DNA of 63,216 nucleotides, filler included, from Choristocarpus tenellus KU-1152 (taxonomy: Eukaryota > Protista > Phaeophyceae), in assembly GCA_964200185.2 (NCBI GenBank). It is 15 parts of 15 records of this genome, joined end to end, with 100 filler letters (N's around TTAATTAATTAA, not from the genome) between each part and the next. Parts side by side here need not be neighbours in the genome. Positions count along the whole stretch, not along the records: positions 50,588 to 60,015 come from CAXNAD020003681.1; 14 more parts are not named here. The stretch is one strand, 5' to 3'. The number at the start of each line of letters is the position of its first letter. Position 1 is the stretch's first letter. A model generated the notes under the pieces. The model was not told the origin of the DNA and did no database searches. It saw only the letters and a list, made by a program, of their open reading frames with translations. Positions 16,831 through 60,015 of the stretch are shown in pieces. The position numbers and the translations under genes are program-made.

Positions 16831-16982
16831 AAAGAAAGGTGGGTCCAAATGAAAGAAATCGCCCTTATGTCTGATACATTCACTCATATGATATGAAAAA
16901 TTCAACGGGATCACAGAGGCCCAGAATGGATGCTAACCGCTCTCTATGATACTACAGGCCTGAACATGGCCATCAGAGTGGG

Positions 16983-17241
16983 AAGTTAAAGTATCTTAGA
17001 GGGTAGAGCCACGTCTGTTAGGGGGCCAAAATCCAATATTGCGATTTTGATGTCATTTTGGCCATCATGTTTGTTCGAAATTGTCAATATCCTTGTTCCA
17101 GACACACCTTTGATAACATATACATTTTACCTACTCCAAAATGTTTTGGAGTAGGTAAAATGTCATAAAAAAAAATGTGGGGAGTCAAGCCTGAAATGGA
17201 AAAATAGACCAAAACTCGTACCCTCTAAGATACTTTCACTC
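16983..17241. mobile_element. MITE family A, complete
   Basis: TIR AAAGTATCTTAGAGGGTA / TACCCTCTAAGATACTTT with a central hairpin. Confidence 0.92.
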
Positions 17242-17641: not shown

Positions 17642-20400
17642 CCTGCCATCTTTTGTGGGGTGCCAATGAACACCACCTGCTTGCTGGACTACGCGATTGG
17701 TCACGAGGTCCAGGACGTGAAACGTGCCAAGGGGTTGATCCATTGGCATCCCTAGCATGATACACTGTCGCTCATGACTCCCATGTTTGTGTGTTGGGTT
17801 GGACTTGCAGTATCCAGGAGTGCTGAAAGTCGGTATGCCCATCAGAGACCCAACCTCTCCATATAGTGCGCGATAAGGAGAAAGTCCCTTGTTTGCAGCA
17901 GTGGTACTTCCGTTGAGAATGAACGCTGAATGATGATACACCTTTCCTCACGACCACATTTTCTCACCCAATCCTGCGGAGTAGATGCTGGCCCTTGCAC
18001 CAGTGTCAACCTGAGCGATATGACGTTTGGCCATGCCATTGTACTGAGGTTCTCCTGTTCTTATAATTTCCTGCATTGCACCCATTTCCATCATCAAAGT
18101 CTGAAATTCCTCACTTTGCCATTCACCCTGAGGATCACGTCAGACGTATCGAATGTGTTGCCCGCTGGGGATGACTTGGACCATGTGCCATCGCCCAAGG
18201 GCATTTACTGCATCATTCTTCTGCTTGAGTAGGTATATCATGATGAAATGCATAGCATCATCAACAATTACCAGGGCATACAGTGCTCCATCAAGAGATT
18301 GCTCTTTCTTAGGTCCGGTGAGGTCAATCAAAATATGGGTCAATGGTCGTTACAATGCGCTCCAGAACATACTTCCACGGGATGTGTAACTCTAACCCAA
18401 TAACCTTAAAACAACACTACGGGGTATTTCCACAGTTGATAGCCACGTGCGGGTGTCAGCCACTCTTCTCTCAATGCTTCACTTAGTGCTTAGCTCAAAG
18501 CTTGACTTAATGTTTTAGTTGAGAATTAAAGAGTGAATCAAGACGTACTTTGGTGACTGTCTAAGTATTATTTATTTGCATCATCCACCCGAATTCTACA
18601 GCCTACAAGTTGAAAGACATGTGCCAGCTGTTGTATATTTACTCAAATTACAAATCTTTCCTGCAACTTCTAAGAAATCAACATTTATTCTGTAAGGCCA
18701 CCTATGTGCTATGAATCTCGTATATTGCTCGCACTTGCTAGAACACGAGAAGAAATGCTCATGCTATTCGCCTGTAACAGTCCCCCTTAGCATGAACTAT
18801 AGTAGACGTGGGGATGGGATCTCTGATTCGAATTGCCTTAGCATAACCCACACACTTTGTTGTGACCAGATGTCCTGACAGCTTAATTCCCTGTTCACTT
18901 GCCGTGCAACGGAGGATTGGCTCACCAGCATGGTTCAAAATGCCATGAAAAACTTTAATGTACATGGGTGTAGATGAAAAATCTGCAACAGGAGGTGAAT
19001 CATCAGAGGGTCCCAACCTTTCAACTTCGGTGGTATGCATCAATCCATCCCACTAAAAAATTGGAAGACCCTCCCCATCAGATATGTAGTAGGCATCGTC
19101 AGTCCCCTTGATAGTGACTTCATCAGCCTTACAGGCAGAGTGTGAGGATAGGAGGTTGAATGCTAGATTGAGGACAAGAGCGACCGACAGACTCTAGAGT
19201 AACATGTACCCACTCATGATGGCCTACTTTGAAGTTAAGGCCAGGCATACCATGTCCCTTGATAGGTGATGATGTGCCATCGGCAACTATTATTTTGCGG
19301 CCTTCTGGACACGGTCTTTAGCTGTACATGTTTCTGCGATCATTAGTCACACTGTTGGATGTCCCCGAATCAAAGCACTATATCTCTAGTCCAAACACTC
19401 TTACCTTCTTGTGATCGACTACCGCAGCAAATGTAGCCTTGAACCTCCTTCCTCTTTTTTTCTTTGCTAGTTCCAGCCCTGGCCCAGCCAATACTTCCAC
19501 CTGTTTAGACAGAGTTGCCTTCCCCTGGCTACAACGTACAGCAGGTGTCCTTTTCCCCAAAGTTAAGACACAGTCCTTCGAACGGACAAGGACCGTCATG
19601 CTTGATTAGTCCGCAATTGAAACACCTTTCATGGGTCTTGATCTCACACCAGGCATGGGATCCTGTCGTATACCAGGGTTTGCATGATGACTAGTCGCGC
19701 TATGGCCACCTCCTCGGTTGACCTTCAGTATCCTCACCGTTAGAGTGCTCCCAGGCTCTCTGTGGTTCCCTGCACCTCTCGTTGGAGGGGAAAATATCTC
19801 GAATGAGCAGCCTGTGTGTAGTGCTCTCGTTCGTTCTCCATTACTGTGATGTTGTAGGTAGTGTTTGGTAATGTGATAGTCATCATCCAGACAACCCGGC
19901 ATAAGAATTTGTAGGACTTGTTCTGACATCTCGTGCCCCATCATAACCATCTGTCCAACCCAGTCCATCATAGTAGTGAAAGTGATCTGGGGTTCTGACC
20001 CCCGAGGCATCTTGACGTTCATTACCAACTTGTGCAGCCTAGCAATTTCCTCATCTGAATGGATGAGAATATGCTCCTTCAGTTGTTTCCACTCCTCGGA
20101 GAGTGAAGCTGCATTGCGGACAATACATCTATTGAAGCCGCTGGTGCTCCTTAACAGGACATGATATGCCTTCTTCGCCTTGACAAATTCATCTTCACAC
20201 ACTCCTTCCCCCTTAGTGAAGTTTATGTCATCCACTCGAAGCAGGTCCTCCGTATGCTCCAATGCTTGGTTGATATCACCTTTCGCCCAAGAATGCACAC
20301 GTCATGGTGAACCAGTCAGCATAATTGTCATCAGACAATTGAAGGAGTTTGGTATGAAGACCGTCTAAGGCCATGAGTGATGCTACCAGCCCAACCCACT
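17642..20400 (-). mobile_element. Degenerate Ty1/Copia internal region (gag, protease, GAG-pre-integrase, integrase)
   Basis: Gag LSDDNYADW...KKAYHVLLRST (19606-20370); protease-like FDSGTSNSVT; FHGILNHAGE..LR (18759-19043); integrase IDLTGP....LDGALYALVIVDDA (18140-18343). Confidence 0.85.
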
Positions 20401-50482: not shown

Positions 50483-51109
50483 CGCTGNNNNNNNNNNNNN
50501 NNNNNNNNNNNNNNNNNNNNNNNNNNNNNNNTTAATTAATTAANNNNNNNNNNNNNNNNNNNNNNNNNNNNNNNNNNNNNNNNNNNNTTGCCCGAAACGG
50601 ACCTCCCCTTAAAAACCCCCCCCCCCCCCCCCAGATACTTTGACCCATTAGGGTATTTACAACTTAGTTATCCCACTATAGTCATACTAGAAATCAAGGC
50701 TACGAAATTTATTCCCTAAGTTCAAATTATGCTCAAAACCATGGAATTGAGCTAAAAAGACAATGCAGTTACTAAAAAGTTGTCATTCAATGAACCAGAA
50801 TCTAACAAAGAAACTCTTTCTGCTCTTAGTTCCAAATCATGCCATGGCTACTTCTTTGGTAGATGACTAAAACGAAACCACATTACACCAGCTACTGTTT
50901 CTCCTTCATGAAATTGTGCATTTAATAGTGAAAGAACAGTTGAAATGCCATCACTTAGGCCTGGACACAAGGTATTCCATCAATGCCTATCAAATTAATT
51001 ATTGTCCTAGATAAGAGACGAGGACAATAATCTCAGCAAAATATGCAACACTACATGCTGTAAAAAGTAACCCCTAACCCATGTGTAAAGTGAAGAAGAA
51101 AAAACAACA

Positions 51110-51675
51110 GTAAATGGTGAAACACCTGCACCAACTATGTAAGGGGATGAGCATCCCTTGCACTATGGAGGACAGTAGCCCTTTCATAGTTGACAGGAAT
51201 CTCCGCATGGATCTGGTGTTCCATAAGGGTGCTAGCGGACGCTGGAACTGCCCCCTACAGGTACAAAGGTCTTCTACTACATGGCACATTCGCAGAAGTA
51301 CAGGCAACCTCCCACCTTACCCACTCATCCACCAGCAATAATGGTGTAGCTACTGCTGCAGCTGAGGTGCGAAAGCGCACCCACTACGAGGGCTCTTTGA
51401 TTCTCGTAGTTATATGGAATCACCAGGGAGATGGGCACGGAGGGGTTTATTGGATTCTTGGGATGCCTCCCTAACTCCTCCCATGGCATAGGTATATGTA
51501 GATTGGAGACACGGAGGGCAGTAGTACAACATAGTGCTGAAGTAACAAATGGATTAGGGTTTTCCACATACATGGTATTTCACTTCTGAACAGCTCATAC
51601 TGACAATATAGTTTTAATTGGTTTCCCCTTGATACATCATCTCCAAAATGTCAGAGGGCATAATAATATATAATG
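51110..51675 (+). mobile_element. Internally deleted 3' fragment of the CRE-like element
   Basis: MVKHLHQLCKGMSIPC..RMDLVFH, KRTHYEG; ends CAGAGGGCATAATAATA. Confidence 0.85.
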
Positions 51676-51875
51676 AGAATGTTCAAGGTATGTAAAATTG
51701 TATCGTTTCGTTTTTTATTAGAACATGATAATATCGCGCGCTCGTGCAAAACCAAAATTGAAAAACTCACTAAGATGAGGCAATAAGTGCAGCCCAACGA
51801 GGCGATCACCTGTATCACAGAGGGGGATTATGTGCCCAACGATCGCTAGAGGTGGAATATCTCATACAGAAGGAG

Positions 51876-54800
51876 ATGGCATCCCAAGAAAGTATTTCGC
51901 CAGCGGACTACAAGGTCATTTTGCGGCGTCGGGCTCTGGCACGGCAGGACCAACTACAGCGCCTGAATCACATCGTAGCCGACAGCTCAATGGGTCGTAA
52001 GGAAGGGCCCTGTCAAATGAAGAATTCAATGCTTCCACAAGATCAAACGCTACTTTTAACAGAGGTGAGACCCTAGATCTTGGGGTCACATGACCAGTGT
52101 TTTATGTACCTTTTTTTCCACACCTAGCTCATTTCCCATGCGGGATGTACACTGACATTGTGGTAGTGGCAGGGGATGAGCAGGACGTATTCCCCAACCT
52201 CTAAATATTGATGGTAGAGGAATAATCTGGTGAAGCTGGTTGCATAGTGGAATTTACGGAGGGACGAGAGTGAGGACATTGTCGTGGCTGCAGTCTGATT
52301 CAACTACCAAGCAGCAGCATTTGACGAAACTTTGGTAAGACCGACCAACCGACCAAAGGTCAACCATTGCGGAAAGATGCAAATGGGTCAACACACCCTT
52401 TTCGGTTAAATATACATCACAAAATATGTTGGTATCGGAGACCTTCGCTCTCTTTATTTCACTTCTTGCTGTCATCCAGGCTGGAGGCGAATGTCGTAAG
52501 GTCGGGAAACTCCAAGGACCACTATGCTCTCATGATAAAAATAGCCAGATTCTGGGAGAAGGTGACCGCAATGGTGACGATTGCCGTGAAACATGGAATT
52601 CAAGGTTGATTGCTAGGCATGAGGAATCTCGCTGCTCGGTGAATGATGTGGACATGCCTGGCATGTCCAACACACTGTCGGAGGTGTTACACATCCCAAA
52701 CTGGAGCCGTCAACCTGGAGAAACGAGCATTTCCCATGCTGTTAGGCTCTACTTTTTTCATTTGGATGGCTCTGCGAGCCACGAGGACAACTGCAAAAAC
52801 GTTTTGAGAGAGGTTTGTTCAACTACTCCCTCCACAACTAAACAATACTCCCCTGAGATACTTTTTCAAAAAATATTTCCTGAAGTGGGCAATATGTACC
52901 GAAACAGGGACCCTGGGTACTGGGGAATCTATGCGCTTGCTATGTAGACAACTAATGAATCAAAATTGCATGAGTACTAGGGTTAGTTGTTCCATTCACA
53001 TCCTGTGCCAAGTCCAATGCTTGAATAATCACCTGTGCTGGACTGTAACATGTTTATTTTGATTTCTCCTCCCATGAGGTGCAGCTTTGGGTGAGGTTTT
53101 GCTTTCATTTGCAGCAACAAGTTGAGTGTTAGACGACAATACCCAGTTGAAAACCCTTAGGAGTCATTATCGTGAAAGGAAGTGCACCTTTCATTATCTT
53201 CAAATTTGCACCATACCCTGTGCTATAACCCTTGACAGCTCTACTTCCTAGACTCTTTTACTGTGTACCTTGTATTTCCAGCCAAGAATCAATGTACAGA
53301 GTGCCGTTATAAGGGTCCATTTCACTCTGTACATTAGACATTTTTTTGGGATGGGTAATTTGACTACATTCAGAGCAACATATATCTCGAATGATGAAGG
53401 GTTAGGGTTAGGGTTGAGATCCAAGCGTGATATGTGGTATCCATTGACTTGTGCTGTCTACTTTTCTATTGTGGTAGAAGGCTTAGGGTTAGGGTTTGGT
53501 GTGACTAGGGTGCGAGTGTTTATCTTCTGTGTTGCTTGCCACAAGGTCACTTGGGAGAGGTGTGGCAATGTCTCACACTAGATGTGGCAGTATTGACAAA
53601 GATAAATTGTTGATAGTGGGAATTATTGACAAAGATAAATTGTTGTGAGACGCCAAAGCAGTCTCAGCTTGATGTGAAAATATTCTCTTAAGTATGAGGT
53701 AATGAGGTCATTTTTCACTCTCTTTGTAGTTGCCTTCAACACGAATGCTGGTTTTTCCTAACCCTAACCCTAACCCTAACCCTAATCCTAAGGTTTTCCC
53801 CTTGTACTCCATGGAAGAACTTCAAAAAGGTGCATTACATTTGTCATGTTGAGATTTAGTTATCATTTTTGCTGTGTGCCTTTCATCCTTTTTCTTTCAC
53901 AAGAAGTTGAATTTATAATAGTAGAACGCTTACCTCCTCCCATGATAAAAGAATACCATGTCACTGGTGAGTTATGCTTTGCAAGGGAAGGCGGGGGGGT
54001 TGTGGTGGAATGTGCAAGTTGTAGCCATTTTTTTTTCCAGGTTGTTTTACCTTCTGTAATCCCTTCCATTGCCACATCAGTGCTGCTTGGACAGATCTAT
54101 CTCTCTATTTGATGCTTACGTGGAGACTTGATGGCTTGGATAGACAGCATAGTTGAGAGAACTGAGAACTGAGATGGTTTGTAGAAATCTGTTGTCTATT
54201 GTCACATTGATTGGTAGTAGGTGGCAATAATAGCATGTCTTATTGTTATTAGGAAGGCAGAACCCTGTATTGTCCAAATCCACATTCCACTGGAGTGATC
54301 TATTCATACACTGACGAAGTCGTTTGAATTTTTTGTTTTGTACCTCATTTCAATACATTCTTGAGGGTTTGGGTTACTTTTTTAATATATATTCTTGTCT
54401 TCGCCTTAGCCCAGGGGCCAGCCCAATCCATGGTCAGAGGCACTACACACTGCGCTGCTTCTCAAATTTGTATCTGTTATCTGTTTCACTACCTCACTAG
54501 CACTGCCTGTACTGCCTCTAGTTGTGCCTTGTATCCAAAGTGGTTAGCTAACCCTAACGCTATCCCTAACCCTACAACTCTCTCTTTCTAGACCACTCAC
54601 CGAAGTGAATTTACTCCCTGAATTTACCTTCTGTGTTCATCTGCACCTGTGTGACATCTGCACCTGTGTGACATCTGCACCTGTGTGACAGATTCTGGAG
54701 CATGTAGCCGTGGAGGAGCTCGATGTGCCAACTTTGAGGATGCGTCACCTGATTAAGGTTAGGGTTATAGGGTTAGGGTTGCTTTATTGCAGCTGGGAAA

Positions 54801-57800
54801 ACCTTCACTTCACCTTCTGGAATTTCTATCATGCTGAATGCATATTACATTGATGAGTGTGTTCATGTTCCTGTTCATGTTCCTGTTCATGTTCCTGTTC
54901 ATGTTCCTGTTCATGTTCATGTTCATGTTCCTCGCTACGACTGTGATTTCATTGCTCTGTATTGGATGTCTGTCTCTGTTTTGGATGTCTGTCTCTGTTT
55001 TGGATGTCTGTCTCTGTTTTGGATGTCTGTCTCTGTTTTGGATGTCTGCCTGTCTCTGTAGATTGAGGCGTTTTTGCGGGCTACGACTCTGTGTGTACCA
55101 CATCAACCACATCAATCCTGTCAATCCTGTCAATCCTGGCAATCCTGGCAACAATATGTGCGTGGAGCATTGTCCACTCCACCGGCAATGGATACAAAAA
55201 CCAAGGTGTGGAAGGCGTGTTTTGAGGCGATTACCAAGCGATAAGCACATGCACTGCTTTTTACTGTCAGTGTTAGGGTGTGTTAAGGTCAGGGTTAGGG
55301 TTTTGCACCTCTCTTGTGCGTCTATGTTAAGAAAAAATAATACGCAAATTGTTTACTGCAGTTGAGGATGCTGGGGTATGTACCTCTGTCTTGGTATAAA
55401 CTGTAGTGTGTTAATGTTACCCTATCCCTAACCCTAATTCTAGAATGATATTAGGATAGTATGGTAATGATAGTATGGTAATGGGTGACATCTGGAATTG
55501 AGTGTGTGACTGTGTGTGTGCCTGTTGACTTGTGTGTTTGCCAGGTCTGGCAGCAAATAAGTAAGGCTGAACTCGAATTTCGTATAGGCTTGTTTGTTGG
55601 CATGCTCAGGGCAGAGAGGCAGGGGAAGGAGGAGGTGGATGCAGCGGTGAGTGACTAGCTTTAAGCATGTACTTTTCCTTGCAGCAGATAAGGCATTTTC
55701 TGGTAGCATTCATAGGACGGACACCTGACAAGAGATGGATTTTGCTTGAATTTGATTGGTCATGTTCCATGTTGTAAAGATACTCTTTTGCTACAAATTC
55801 TCCCAGGCATATTTGCTTACATAATGTGTGTTAGGGTTAGGTTTGTTATCATAGTTTGACCATGATTTATTGTGGAGGGTTGGGGTGGTGTGTCCTAACC
55901 CTATTGAGACTAGTTAACCAATACCACTGAGTTTTATGAGGTCCTCTGACTTTCTAGTGTCACATGCCCTCAGAGGGCATAGTCCACGGCTGTGGTTAGG
56001 ATTAGGGTTAGGTTAGTGCGGAGTGCGTTTTGTTTATTGGTTAGGGTTAGGGTTAGGGTTAGGTTATCTATAGTCTATTATCTATAACCTATAATCTTTA
56101 CCGAGGCAAGTTATCTTTACCAATGTCCTTTTTTTTAATGTCTTCTTCTATCAGATTTAAATTGAAAATACCCTTGAAACTCAGTATGGTCAAACTTAAT
56201 ATAGTCAAACTCAATATAGTCAAACTTAATATGGTCAAACTCAATATAGTCAAACTTAATATAGTCACGATCTTTCCCCCTCTCCGTTCCCCCTCAATCA
56301 ATATTTTGTTGCAGCCCCTGCTGTTTCATGAAAGATCCGTGACTGTTTAGCATAACCCTAACCCTAACCTATTCTTGGCAAACAACAAATCTCTTACCTT
56401 TTGCAATGGGAGTATGCCCCACTGTCACTCACAAACTTACTGCCTTTTTTCCTTTGATGTATTGGTGAGAGTATTTACAGTTGGACTCTATACGAGTGGA
56501 AGTATTGGTGAGAGGTTATACTGCCAACGCAAGGGAGATCTTGCCCATGCAACGTCCTGCAAGAACAATTCTCCCCCCCCTCCTGTTCTGCATGGCATGC
56601 GAACTCCTGACTGTGCGGATGCTGGGTCCTGAGGTTAGCTTAGTGTGTGTTGTAGTGTGGAGAAAGTCCCTGAGGATGACCATGGTACTTAGAGCATGTT
56701 GACAATTGTGTAGTATTGTATAGAAAATGTATAGTATAGAAGTACTTGTTTCAATTCCTGTGCTGTGTACTTGCCACCTTGAAGAAGTTTGCATCTTTGC
56801 AGGAGAGGAGATGCCGTGGTTAGGGTTGGTATGTTCCTTGTTTGATTCTGGGTGAGTGAAAGTGTTAGGGTTAGGGTCTATGGATGATGTAGTCTGAACT
56901 TAGTGTTAGGGTTAGTGTCTGTGGATGATGTAGTCTGAACTTAGGGTTAGGGTTAAGGTCTATGGATGATGTAGTCTGAACTTAGGGTTAGGGTCTGTGG
57001 ATGATGTAGTCTGAACCTTTTCGTGTTAGTCCAGTCTGGCACACTGTACAGTATACAATATACAATATTCAACATCAAATATTCATTATTCAATATACAG
57101 TATACAGTATTCAAGATGATTGTTGACGTTAGTCATTTGAGCAGTTGGTATCTGATTTGTACACTGAGCTCGTGTCCTATTTCTAGGTTATTTCTAGGTT
57201 ATGTCAACACTGACAATTGAATGTTGGCATTTGCACCTGTGAGCGTTTTATTTCAAGAATGGTGTGATCCCAAAGTGCCCAATGTTGACACTTGACAAGA
57301 TGTTTTTGGGTTAGTTCTTTGAGCTGGATATGGTTGTGAGCAGTAATGACCTATTAATTGGCTGGTGATGAAACCTGTTCAAATTGCCATGTTCATATCC
57401 CTTGATAGGTAAGGGATAGGGCTTCTCACATGTCTTATTGTCAAGTAGTATCCAAGGATAAATTGGGAACATGTGAATCCAAGGTACAGATGATCTTGAG
57501 GTATAGCCTTTCATCCCTCTGTTGACATCCCTGTCGAAGAAATGCACTGCTATAATCTCTCTTGAATCTCTATTGTTCCTGCCATACCACCTTGACTTTG
57601 ACTTCATAATATCATCCCGTTGAGATATGTTCCTCTGTCATTTTTATACAAGTGGAGCTCTCATTGCATATTGGTTGGTGTTTCTGAGTGATGGTGAGGT
57701 AGGAGAGTAGGAACAGTGTGCACAAGAAGTATTGTTTGTAGAAAGATGATGACAGATGATGACAAGTACACAGCCTTTTTGTCACATCTCTGTCACAGTA

Positions 57801-59167
57801 CCATAGAATTGCCCTCCAGCCTCCCCCATCCCTTGAATATTTTTATTATAATTATTATGTTGCTATTGTTAGTGTTACTCTCAACCTCATTCCTTTATAT
57901 TTATCAAAAATTCAAAGTATCGTGACTGCCCACTGCTGGACAACTAACCCTAACCCTATCCCACTACTCCACGGCTAACCCTAACCCTCTGTCACCACTG
58001 GATGACTATCCCTTACCCTATCCCACTACTGCACGGCTAACCCTAACCCTCTCTCACCGCTGGACGACTGTCCCTAACCCTATCCCACTACTGCACGACT
58101 AACCCTAACCCTAGCTCACCACTGGACGACTATCCCTAACCCTATCCCACTACTGCGCGACTAACCCTAACCCTATCCCACTACTGTATGACTGCATAGG
58201 TGCGAAGTGCTGTTAGTAAGGTTGTTTCAGACTACGAAGCCCGTGCCAAGCTCTGGATGAACCCCTTGCAGAACTCAGATCAGTACCTCCGCCCTCTTGC
58301 ACACGAGTTTGTCACATGGTTGCGTCAAAACAGGGGCATGCTGTATCAGAGCAGTGCAACTGAAGGGTTGTTGAGGAGCATTGATAGGGAGTTAAGGACC
58401 ACCCTGAAGGGTCAGGTGTGTGTTTTACTCCTTGTGGTTTTTCCCGCTAGTATTGTGTCTCACCTTAGGGTTAGGGTTAGTCTCATCTTACCTTGCTTGC
58501 TTATGTTGGACACTGCTTTGTGATCCTATGAATGGTCTCTTGTTCGCAATTGCAAGTATGTGCTCTGCACGATCATATCCTTATTAGTGCAAATATCCAT
58601 GAGCCATTATCTTTGGTTAGGGTTAGGGTTAGGGTTAGGTCATTGTTCCCATTTCTGGTTGGATCCTGCTTGGAGAGTTACTTAAGTTAATTGTGTGGTA
58701 TATCTCACATGTTGTATTTCATGTAGGCGTGGCATCATCAATCATGGGCCATAGCCAAGAGACAGCAATTTTGTTTGGGGTGTGAGGTGAGGTTGTACCT
58801 GTACATAAGTACATAATGTGCACAGTAAATGCCAACAGTCCCTCCCTGTGTAACATTTCCTGTTCCCCTTCTATTGCTGAAATTTCTAATTTTCTTCTTT
58901 GGAAACAAATTACCAATGGTGTTTTCTAGACATCGTTTTTTACACACTACACAATACACACAGAATCTAAAAAAAAAAAAAAAAACAAGTTGTTCATGCC
59001 CTAACCCTAACCCTAGCTGTCTATTTATTTTTTTGTTTTAGGTGTATGAATCTCCTCACCATTTCTTGTTGGTGTTGAGGTCTCTCAAGGACCGTCTGAC
59101 AGACATGCCACTCCCATCGTACAATCCCTCCTGTGGGGATGAAGATCACCCATTCAATGTCACTCAG
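51876..59167 (+). CDS. Multi-exon hypothetical protein; exons 51876-52064, 52480-52812, 54692-54757, 55062-55205, 55545-55646, 56481-56633, 58200-58415, 59042-59167; 3' end missing
   Basis: All junctions are GT-AG and phase 0, and the joined frame is open: ...NVLRE|ILEHVAVEELDVPTLRMRHLIK|IEAFLRA...|VWQQISKAELEFRIGLF...|LDSIRVEVLVRGY...GPE|VRSAVSKVVSDYEA...KGQ|VYESPHHFLL. The first two exons are less certain. Confidence 0.7.
54638..55050 (+). repeat. Intronic short tandem repeats: 17-bp CATCTGCACCTGTGTGA x3, 12-bp GTTCATGTTCCT array, 19-bp TGTCTCTGTTTTGGATGTC array
   Basis: Directly visible. Confidence 0.9.
56177..56267 (+). repeat. 15-bp tandem repeat AAACT(C/T)AATAT(A/G)GTC x6
   Basis: Directly visible. 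Confidence 0.9.
56863..57016 (+). repeat. Minisatellite (~35-40 bp x4): (GTTAGG)n + TCT(A/G)TGGATGATGTAGTCTGAAC
   Basis: Directly visible; G-strand telomeric hexamers in each unit. Confidence 0.9.
57930..58190 (+). repeat. Minisatellite (~62 bp x ~4) containing CTAACCCTAACCCT
   Basis: Units CCCACTACTGCACGGCTAACCCTAACCCT...CCACTGGACGACTATCCCTAACCCTAT end ~10 nt before the acceptor at 58199. Confidence 0.9.
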
Positions 59168-59966
59168 GTACATGCAAGTGTGGTGTGGTGTGAATACCAT
59201 ACTTAGGGTTAGGGGTTGAACAACAGGGAGTGTGGAAGAAGTGCCAGTTGCTTTGATCCTGGAATAGAGCATGGAGTTCCAACTAAGTTGAGGCGATCAC
59301 GATGGAGCTACAATAACCAAAACATGTACATGATGGGTGTACTTGAATTTTTCCATTGTTGTTGGGGACTTTGATAACTCTCAGCACTGAGTACTGACTA
59401 CTGGCTTACACATACTCCTAGTCAATCCAACAACATTACATAGAAAAAATCTGACTTCTTTTTTTTTGCACTCATCATGAATGGTTAGGGTTAGGGCTTC
59501 TCATGAGGTGGGAAATCGGTAATCAAATCAGGCAGGATAGGTTATGTCATTTGTACATGCAATATGTGTCTATTGTGTCACTCACTGGATGGGGCTCTTG
59601 TTAGTGTGTATGTTTACCCAGGTGGACAGCAATGATAAGAAACTGCATAGTAGTGATCGTTAAAAGATATTTTGCAAGGTTTAGGGTTGGTGAAGTTTTG
59701 ACTCAGTGTGCTTGTCCTTTGTCTTGTGGGTGAATTTGTCCCATTTGCACCAGACCCACTTGTCTCATTTGTCTACCCCAGTTTCTTGTGTTCTGATATG
59801 TGTGAATACTCCCTTCCTGCAACCTGTTCCCCTCTTACCCTCAACAGTTTTTGGTGTTGTGATAGTCTGGTTCTTCCTTTGTATCAGAGTGATGCATCCA
59901 ATACACTCTAACCCTAACCCTACTCTATAACAATATCTCAAGGTGATGTTCTTTCAACCCCCCCCC

Positions 59967-60015
<49 letters not shown>

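Follow-up and report, generated by a model that had tools for sequence, protein, structure and literature searches.

In zebrafish, complementary AC and GT repeats lie at opposite intron boundaries and are needed for splice-site pairing, and structured human introns carry G triplets at their start and C triplets at their end (PMC4691745). Telomere-type repeats also occur within introns: interstitial telomeric sequences (ITSs) are intron-enriched in Caenorhabditis, where they are linked to silent chromatin and small RNAs (PMC6800518), and are pervasive in the coccolithophore Calcidiscus leptoporus (PMC13518057). The order or polarity of ITSs inside introns is unreported in both of these ITS studies, the brown-algal comparative genome paper is silent on telomere-type repeats in introns, and our literature search yielded no account of telomere-type repeats ordered within introns. 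Here we analyze such repeats in one gene of Choristocarpus tenellus, located at positions 50588-60015 of the window (the whole stretch of DNA analyzed, 63,216 nt with filler). These positions are the entire contig CAXNAD020003681.1 (9428 bp, 43% G+C, assembly GCA_964200185.2). Choristocarpus belongs to the Discosporangiales, the order of brown algae that branched off first within the class. An earlier, sequence-only reading of this DNA had proposed a seven-exon gene with (GGGTTA)n toward the donor and (TAACCC)n toward the acceptor of its introns, and had cited the complementary AC/GT repeats at fish intron ends as a precedent, which PMC4691745 bears out. Its assumption of a stramenopile source was correct.

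Order of telomere-type tracts within introns

Tracts were scored as perfect TTAGGG-periodic runs of at least 10 nt in introns 1-7 (6324 nt), those reading (TTAGGG)n on the sense strand being termed G-type and those reading (CCCTAA)n C-type. The introns contained 17 G-type and 15 C-type runs (32 in total; approximately 5 per kb), compared with a mean of 0.04 and a maximum of 2 across 300 shuffles. Tandem units of TTAGGG, the presumed telomere repeat of Choristocarpus as a brown alga, were present in introns, and this hexamer exceeded all other tandem hexamer repeats there (60 and 53 twelve-mers vs 12 for the next motif). Most runs were 11-17 nt long, and tracts spanned 2 to 5 hexamer units. At this locus the tracts were restricted to introns, and the 1288 nt upstream of the gene held no run of at least 10 nt (Poisson P 0.0015 at the intron density).

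From donor to acceptor, the runs of introns 1-7 read GGCCC, GG, GC, GCGGC, GGGGGCCCCCCC, GGC, and GGC, with 5 G and 7 C tracts in intron 5. Both types were present in 6 of the 7 introns, and in all six a G tract came first and a C tract last, so that the proposed G-then-C polarity held throughout. Across ordered pairs, G preceded C in 50 cases and followed it in 2. Both exceptions trace to a 10-nt C run at 55894, the minor hit near 55895 that had already been flagged and the sole run out of order. Intron 2 (54758-55061) indeed had G tracts only.

The order persisted when each tandem array was collapsed to one event (20 events): relative to G tracts, C tracts were shifted toward the 3' end by 0.52 of an intron length (two-sided permutation p 3.5e-5). 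Of the 6 C-to-G gaps, 5 were occupied by an exon, against 0 of the 7 G-to-C gaps (Fisher p 0.0047). Randomly oriented ITSs would have no preferred orientation, whereas the Choristocarpus tracts are strongly ordered. The order at this locus is not due to chance.

Every tract listed in the sequence-only reading was present at its given position. The tracts are as follows.

53398-53415, plus strand: G tract in intron 1, 18 nt
53483-53496, plus strand: G tract in intron 1, 14 nt
53757-53785, plus strand: C tract in the middle of intron 1, 29 nt
54548-54574, plus strand: C tract in intron 1, two 11-nt runs, 117 nt before the acceptor
54757-54780, plus strand: G tract in intron 2, includes the donor GT
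55272-55302, plus strand: G tracts in intron 3, 8 and 12 nt
55420-55437, plus strand: C tract in intron 3, 107 nt before the acceptor
55830-55841, plus strand: G tract in intron 4, 183 nt past the donor
55894-55903, plus strand: C tract in intron 4, 10 nt, the out-of-order run
55994-56063, plus strand: G tracts in intron 4, 19 and 25 nt
56353-56369, plus strand: C tract in intron 4, 17 nt, 111 nt before the acceptor
56818-56994, plus strand: G array in intron 5, five tracts, 35-41-nt unit x4
57944-58175, plus strand: C array in intron 5, seven tracts, 31-mer x8.5, its final partial copy being the acceptor region
58465-58480, plus strand: G tract in intron 6, 49 nt past the donor
58615-58639, plus strand: G tract in intron 6, 25 nt
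58999-59015, plus strand: C tract in intron 6, with a CTAAC branch-type A 31 nt before the acceptor and a pyrimidine tract after it
59203-59214, plus strand: G tract in intron 7, 35 nt past the donor, containing the stop TAG of the deposited model
59483-59496, plus strand: G tract in intron 7
59908-59922, plus strand: C tract in intron 7, with a CTAAC A 26 nt before the probable acceptor at 59943

The first G tract starts -1, 35, 49, 66, 183, or 184 nt past the donor in six introns and 585 nt past it in intron 1. At the other end, the distance from the last C tract to the acceptor is 21-26 nt in introns 5, 6, and 7 and 107-117 nt in introns 1, 3, and 4. Tandem arrays reach the acceptor in three introns (54638-54690, 17-mer x3; 54955-55048, 19-mer x5; 57929-58193, 31-mer x8.5), and in the Choristocarpus genome tandem duplication seems to arise readily just before the 3' splice site.

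This arrangement resembles the (AC)m-(GT)n introns of zebrafish and lamprey (Lin et al. 2016, PMC4691745) in placing complementary simple repeats on opposite sides of an intron, in uniform order along the gene, and the human GGG...CCC class in having G at the 5' side and C at the 3' side. Unlike in the fish introns, the unit is a telomere hexamer rather than a dinucleotide, and the tracts (11-29 nt) often lie 50-185 nt from the splice sites. Bridged introns of the AC/GT type would be expected to show genome-wide co-occurrence above an independence model across introns and not across exons; given the uniform order, the tracts at the Choristocarpus locus co-occur across exons as well. While the Choristocarpus case is read from the sequence of one locus, the fish case is supported by co-occurrence across the genome, by minigenes, and by independence from U2AF2. 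Like known ITSs (PMC6800518, PMC13518057), the tracts are short internal hexamer runs that are intron-enriched, absent from exons, and not shared by orthologues. They differ from known ITSs in their density per kb of intron and in their strict G-then-C layout.

The gene and its relatives

The exons that delimit these introns are listed below.

52426-52812, plus strand: exon 1, final 37 codons conserved; the deposited model enters at approximately 52480 from an upstream exon
54692-54757, plus strand: exon 2, 22 codons; open frame, relatives, and deposited protein
55062-55205, plus strand: exon 3, 48 codons; open frame, relatives, and deposited protein
55545-55646, plus strand: exon 4, 34 codons; open frame, relatives, and deposited protein
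56481-56633, plus strand: exon 5, 51 codons; donor GTTAGC
58200-58415, plus strand: exon 6, 72 codons; highest conservation of all exons
59042-59167, plus strand: exon 7, 42 codons; open frame, relatives, and deposited protein
59944-60015, plus strand: exon 8, probable start; a proline-rich stretch appearing as C homopolymer, at the contig end

Exons 1-7 form a single open frame, with lengths that are all multiples of 3, introns that are all phase 0, and borders that are all GT-AG. Skipping any internal exon would therefore preserve the frame. Exons were searched singly, and the full-length protein query (P0037) was the database sequence deposited for this contig (CAM9451935.1, titled 'unnamed protein product'), which exons 1-7 match in order at 97-100%. 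All seven exons were found in four other brown-algal contigs with 42-78% amino acid identity and with identical boundaries where aligned, and six further related loci carry whichever exons they cover. Open frames, GT-AG borders, the deposited protein, and conservation in relatives thus bear out the predicted seven-exon model.

The deposited annotation differs from this model at the exon 5/6 junction, which it places at 56657/58221 instead of 56633/58200 (donor 24 nt and acceptor 21 nt downstream of the junction supported by conservation). The first residues of exon 6 (VR.V) are conserved in relatives, favoring 56633/58200, and the deposited junction may reflect either alternative splicing or an annotation error. 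Relatives gave no confirmation of the deposited upstream exon (51876-52066). The gene is truncated by the contig end, with exon 8 (apart from its probable start) and later exons missing. Because the contig ends before exon 8, the deposited model stops inside an intron 7 tract, taking as its stop codon the TAG (59204-59206) within a TTAGGG unit of the first G tract there. The C homopolymer at the 3' end of the contig aligns with a proline-rich stretch of exon 8 in relatives. Both contig ends carry such homopolymers (17 nt at 50616-50632 and 58 nt at 59958-60015), and the 58-nt one may be a collapsed or miscalled low-complexity run.

No Pfam family was found for any exon, and a protein atlas search was likewise empty; the gene is a brown-algal orphan. 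A search for the 173-aa open reading frame of exon 1 found no database record, a JGI metagenome scan with the exon 6 alignment gave no match, the C-terminal portion of the Discosporangium protein, used as a query, returned no Choristocarpus fragment, and Rfam identified no RNA family within the contig. Exons 2, 5, and 6 (and 7 in most) have the same lengths in the four full-length relatives, while exons 3 and 4 were partly aligned. Exon 3 is the least conserved exon (38-43% identity) and contains a 9-nt tandem repeat (55097-55151, approximately 4 copies) that encodes a QSCQSCQSWQSW stretch. The intron 2 donor is GTTAGG in Choristocarpus, GTAAAT in relative L001, and of the GC-AG type (AAG/GCAAGA; here and below a slash marks the splice junction) in relatives L002:1201, L003:1583, and L004:744.

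Comparison with relatives dates the tracts. Runs of at least 10 nt numbered 3.4 per kb in Choristocarpus and 1.5 per kb in Discosporangium mesarthrocarpum, and 0 to 0.27 per kb in nine related loci (Sphacelaria rigidula, the outgroup Chrysoparadoxa australica, and seven brown-algal contigs), with which exact insertion points are not alignable. Intron positions are common to Choristocarpus and the tract-free brown algae (all six in four contigs, and the covered ones in shorter contigs). Shared positions mean that the introns are old, so the tracts entered introns that already existed, within Discosporangiales. No tracts lay at matching places when orthologous introns of Choristocarpus and Discosporangium were compared. 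Together, these patterns indicate that the tracts are young and specific to the Discosporangiales lineage.

In Discosporangium, the sense strand of the orthologue carries 9 G tracts and 1 C tract, with two G tracts near acceptors and the C tract near a donor. One Discosporangium tract lies downstream of the last exon of this gene and is probably intergenic. A neighboring calpain gene on the opposite strand has one exon confirmed by Pfam (17825-17986) and a second putative exon (B, approximately 16915-16993), which we infer from a family motif, its frame, and clean splice sites; Pfam and Protein Data Bank searches gave no confirmation of exon B. In the sense direction, the tract order in the intron separating the two is C followed by GGG, and a C tract begins 10 nt past the next calpain donor. 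The Discosporangium introns with both types carry them at opposite ends, and all three read C...G, although three are too few to test.

The Discosporangium contig of the orthologue (L010) lacks exons 1-3 and ends in a 172-nt degenerate C-strand telomere-type array (L010:1-172), located in the expected intron 3. This terminal array marks a real chromosome end or, alternatively, an internal array at which the assembly broke off. Long trinucleotide runs lie beside the calpain exon (L010:17764-18126) and would encode poly-Thr, poly-Leu, or poly-Val depending on frame.

Pairing capacity and explanations of the order

To assess pairing, the longest perfect complement between intron halves was compared with shuffles. 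Perfect complements of 12-18 nt, equal to or longer than the shuffle maximum, were found in 5 of the 7 introns. In minimum free energy folds, G tracts paired with C tracts in each of the 6 introns having both types, forming predicted helices of 4-17 bp, and the longest loop was that of intron 5, with arrays on both sides. Introns of relatives (L001, L002, L004, and Discosporangium gene 1; 1.5-kb blocks for Sphacelaria) showed chance-level complementarity of 6-10 nt. Beyond the hexamer core no complementarity exceeded chance, and the arms have only this core in common. One candidate extension flanking exon 7 (GTTGTTCA / TGAACAAC) was rejected, being expected by chance over approximately 500 comparisons by our own estimate.

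Our leading explanation is that interstitial telomere-type tracts multiplied in the introns of Discosporangiales, most densely in C. tenellus, and came to form RNA helices that bridge each intron. Toward the donor of each intron the pre-mRNA would carry (UUAGGG)n, and toward the acceptor (CCCUAA)n; each C tract, once transcribed, would pair in vivo with a G tract of the same intron. The uninterrupted helix would span 10 to 18 bp in the introns measured and would loop out 46-90% of the intron, bringing the donor close to the branch and acceptor region and so benefiting splicing. Selection, rather than mode of origin, would then lie behind the order. We regard bridging of each intron as possible and hold it tentatively. 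That Choristocarpus recruited hexamer tracts genome-wide as paired bridges, with a G arm after the donor and a C arm before the branch site, is doubtful.

A predicted helix that loops out the intron interior is also a feature of the zebrafish and lamprey bridged introns. Intron looping by hnRNP A/B proteins (PMC1326234) offers a second parallel, as the G tract includes the UAGGG motif and distant intron ends would likewise be brought together. There, however, the motifs are identical, protein-binding sites joined by protein dimerization, whereas the Choristocarpus ends are complementary.

Several observations weigh against bridging. The order G...C is its own reverse complement and reads the same on either strand, and for this reason order alone is no proof of a link to transcription; it could come from any process that makes inverted pairs. 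The excess of G...C nevertheless remains a real asymmetry in need of a cause, since C...G is a different DNA arrangement. Orthologous introns of the relatives measured (four loci) lack such complementarity, and those of relatives outside Discosporangium lack the tracts, which argues that the introns do not need a bridge. Discosporangium tracts lack the Choristocarpus polarity, with C after donors and G before acceptors, and the sister genus differs in this from the fish system. Complementary tracts (C upstream and G downstream) also flank every exon at distances of 183-449 nt; as these partners are closer than most within-intron partners, looping of exons should be at least as easy. In introns 6 and 7, the only C tract lies at the expected branch point, which pairing would hide. 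Intron 2 has no partner tract, and the first strong G tract of intron 1 is remote from its donor. Finally, our view of Choristocarpus covers one locus on one 9.4-kb contig of the genome.

The sequence-only reading had taken the resetting of order at each exon as an argument for a role in splicing. The non-random order stands, and complementary tracts within the same intron are predicted to be able to pair. The argument from order to a splicing role is weaker than that reading had it, given the self-reverse-complementarity of the order, the tract-free relatives, and the unpolarized tracts of Discosporangium.

The same reading had offered an alternative without pairing, in which tracts mimic splice signals. 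Each orientation would be kept or tolerated where it is helpful or harmless, and complementarity would be a by-product. We consider this possible but rather doubtful, and close behind bridging. (CCCUAA)n is pyrimidine-rich and contains the optimal branch-point sequence CUAAC, while (UUAGGG)n contains G/GUUAG, a usable donor or U1-type site, as well as G triplets, whose action as intronic enhancers is known (cited in PMC4691745); a C tract followed by UUAG/G would create a cryptic 3' splice site. The resemblance to GTTAG donors and CTAAC branch points was indeed seen. GTTAG is the donor of introns 2 and 5, and the G-only intron 2 has its donor GT within the G tract itself (AAG/GTTAGGGTTA). A C tract in each of introns 5, 6, and 7 supplies a CTAAC whose A is 26-31 nt from the acceptor, and no usable AG intervenes; the intron 5 C array is a tandem amplification of the acceptor-proximal 31-mer. 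Moreover, introns of this gene in tract-free relatives show a G excess at the 5' side (approximately +0.1 to +0.2) and a C excess in the last fifth (approximately -0.07 to -0.2), so that hexamer orientation follows a pre-existing gradient.

Other observations weigh against mimicry of splice signals. Most G tracts are 35-185 nt away from the donor. In introns 1, 3, and 4, AGs intervene between the distant last C tract and the acceptor, so that this tract is not the branch point there. Relatives rarely have strict CTRAY motifs near acceptors, so that a strong branch site is dispensable. The reverse layout is tolerated in Discosporangium, whose spliceosome is of the same kind: one C tract lies 10 nt past a donor, and five acceptors have G tracts 140-380 nt upstream. 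Bridging and mimicry are compatible with one another, except that one tract cannot be both paired and a branch site, and for introns 6 and 7 this conflict is real.

Intron 1 also contains, at 54564-54591, a C tract followed 20 nt on by CTCTCTCTTTCTAG, giving a textbook branch site, pyrimidine tract, and AG. The cryptic-looking 3' splice site at 54591 is 100 nt upstream of the true exon 2 acceptor and in a different frame.

A neutral origin at the DNA level, with each G...C pair arising from one event, appears unlikely, although it would account for the order simply and stands close behind the two readings above. The event would be insertion of an element with telomere-like terminal inverted repeats (TIRs), or a telomerase-healed break rejoined around filler. 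As such a pair cannot survive in exons, the order would give the impression of restarting at each exon while playing no part in RNA. The self-complementary order, the narrow range of run lengths, and a lineage-specific burst like that of a mobile element are all consistent with this, as are per-intron strings that resemble nested or serial brackets (GGCC, GC, GCGGC). Two reports describe telomerase-mediated insertion of telomeric repeats at repaired breaks in mammals (PMC2246262, PMC7215372). Against a one-event origin, self-BLAST of the introns found nothing in common but the hexamer core and local tandem arrays, and no repeat family. The enclosed stretches vary from 52 to approximately 1300 nt, and no known mechanism yields such variable, unique spacers. 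Tracts begin and end in every hexamer register, and reading of the tract flanks revealed no target-site duplications, although a TTA/TAA duplication would be hidden in the repeat. Healing of two ends predicts abutting G and C tracts, and none were seen. Solo tracts are also common in Discosporangium, as in the gene with 9 sense G tracts to 1 C, and G...C pairs there straddle ancestral calpain exons, which argues that they are not single insertions.

With miniature inverted-repeat transposable elements (MITEs) and introners (10.1101/2022.06.06.494994), the tracts share inverted repeats that bracket a stretch of intron and a lineage-specific burst. They differ in that copies have neither internal sequence in common nor fixed termini, in that reading the flanks showed no target-site duplication, and in that the host introns are ancestral. 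A TIR transposon or MITE was rejected on the first two grounds, and an introner because brown algae without tracts share the intron positions, meaning that the tracts did not create the introns.

It is quite improbable that the tracts were born from splice signals, their telomere likeness being coincidental. Slippage or duplication would have turned GGTTAG into (TTAGGG)n and CTAACC into (CCCTAA)n, and later tandem duplication would have moved copies inward. Arrays run into the acceptor in three introns and include the C tract in intron 5, the intron 2 donor is continuous with a G tract, and tracts at the locus are confined to introns. Most donors, however, are not GTTAG and most G tracts are far from the donor, and the 25-29-nt tracts in mid-intron are hard to account for. 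The Discosporangium tracts are unsorted, with one probably intergenic, and other brown algae have similar signals without tracts. Very unlikely, too, is a peculiarity of one gene, in which ordinary random ITSs happen to be ordered here but not genome-wide; a single contig was examined and Discosporangium follows no consistent rule over 19 kb and two genes, but chance is strongly disfavored by the permutation and Fisher tests and six separate introns agree.

Implications for intron definition in brown algae

Whatever their cause, the density of these tracts is a warning for assembly, telomere-based scaffolding, and gene prediction, the last because the deposited model stops at a TAG inside a tract. 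If the order stems from the origin of the pairs, it would point to an undescribed way of inserting inverted telomere-type repeats.

If the order is genome-wide and the tracts pair, Choristocarpus would represent a second lineage, after fish, that defines introns by simple complementary repeats, and ITSs would gain a role in RNA. Genome-wide recruitment, if true, would be an independent and recent case of structure-based intron definition in a stramenopile, using repeats from telomerase or slippage. Such a system would be young, as it is absent from the outgroup and the other brown algae sampled and unsorted in Discosporangium. The path from repeat burst through sorting to function would then be observable by comparing two published genomes.

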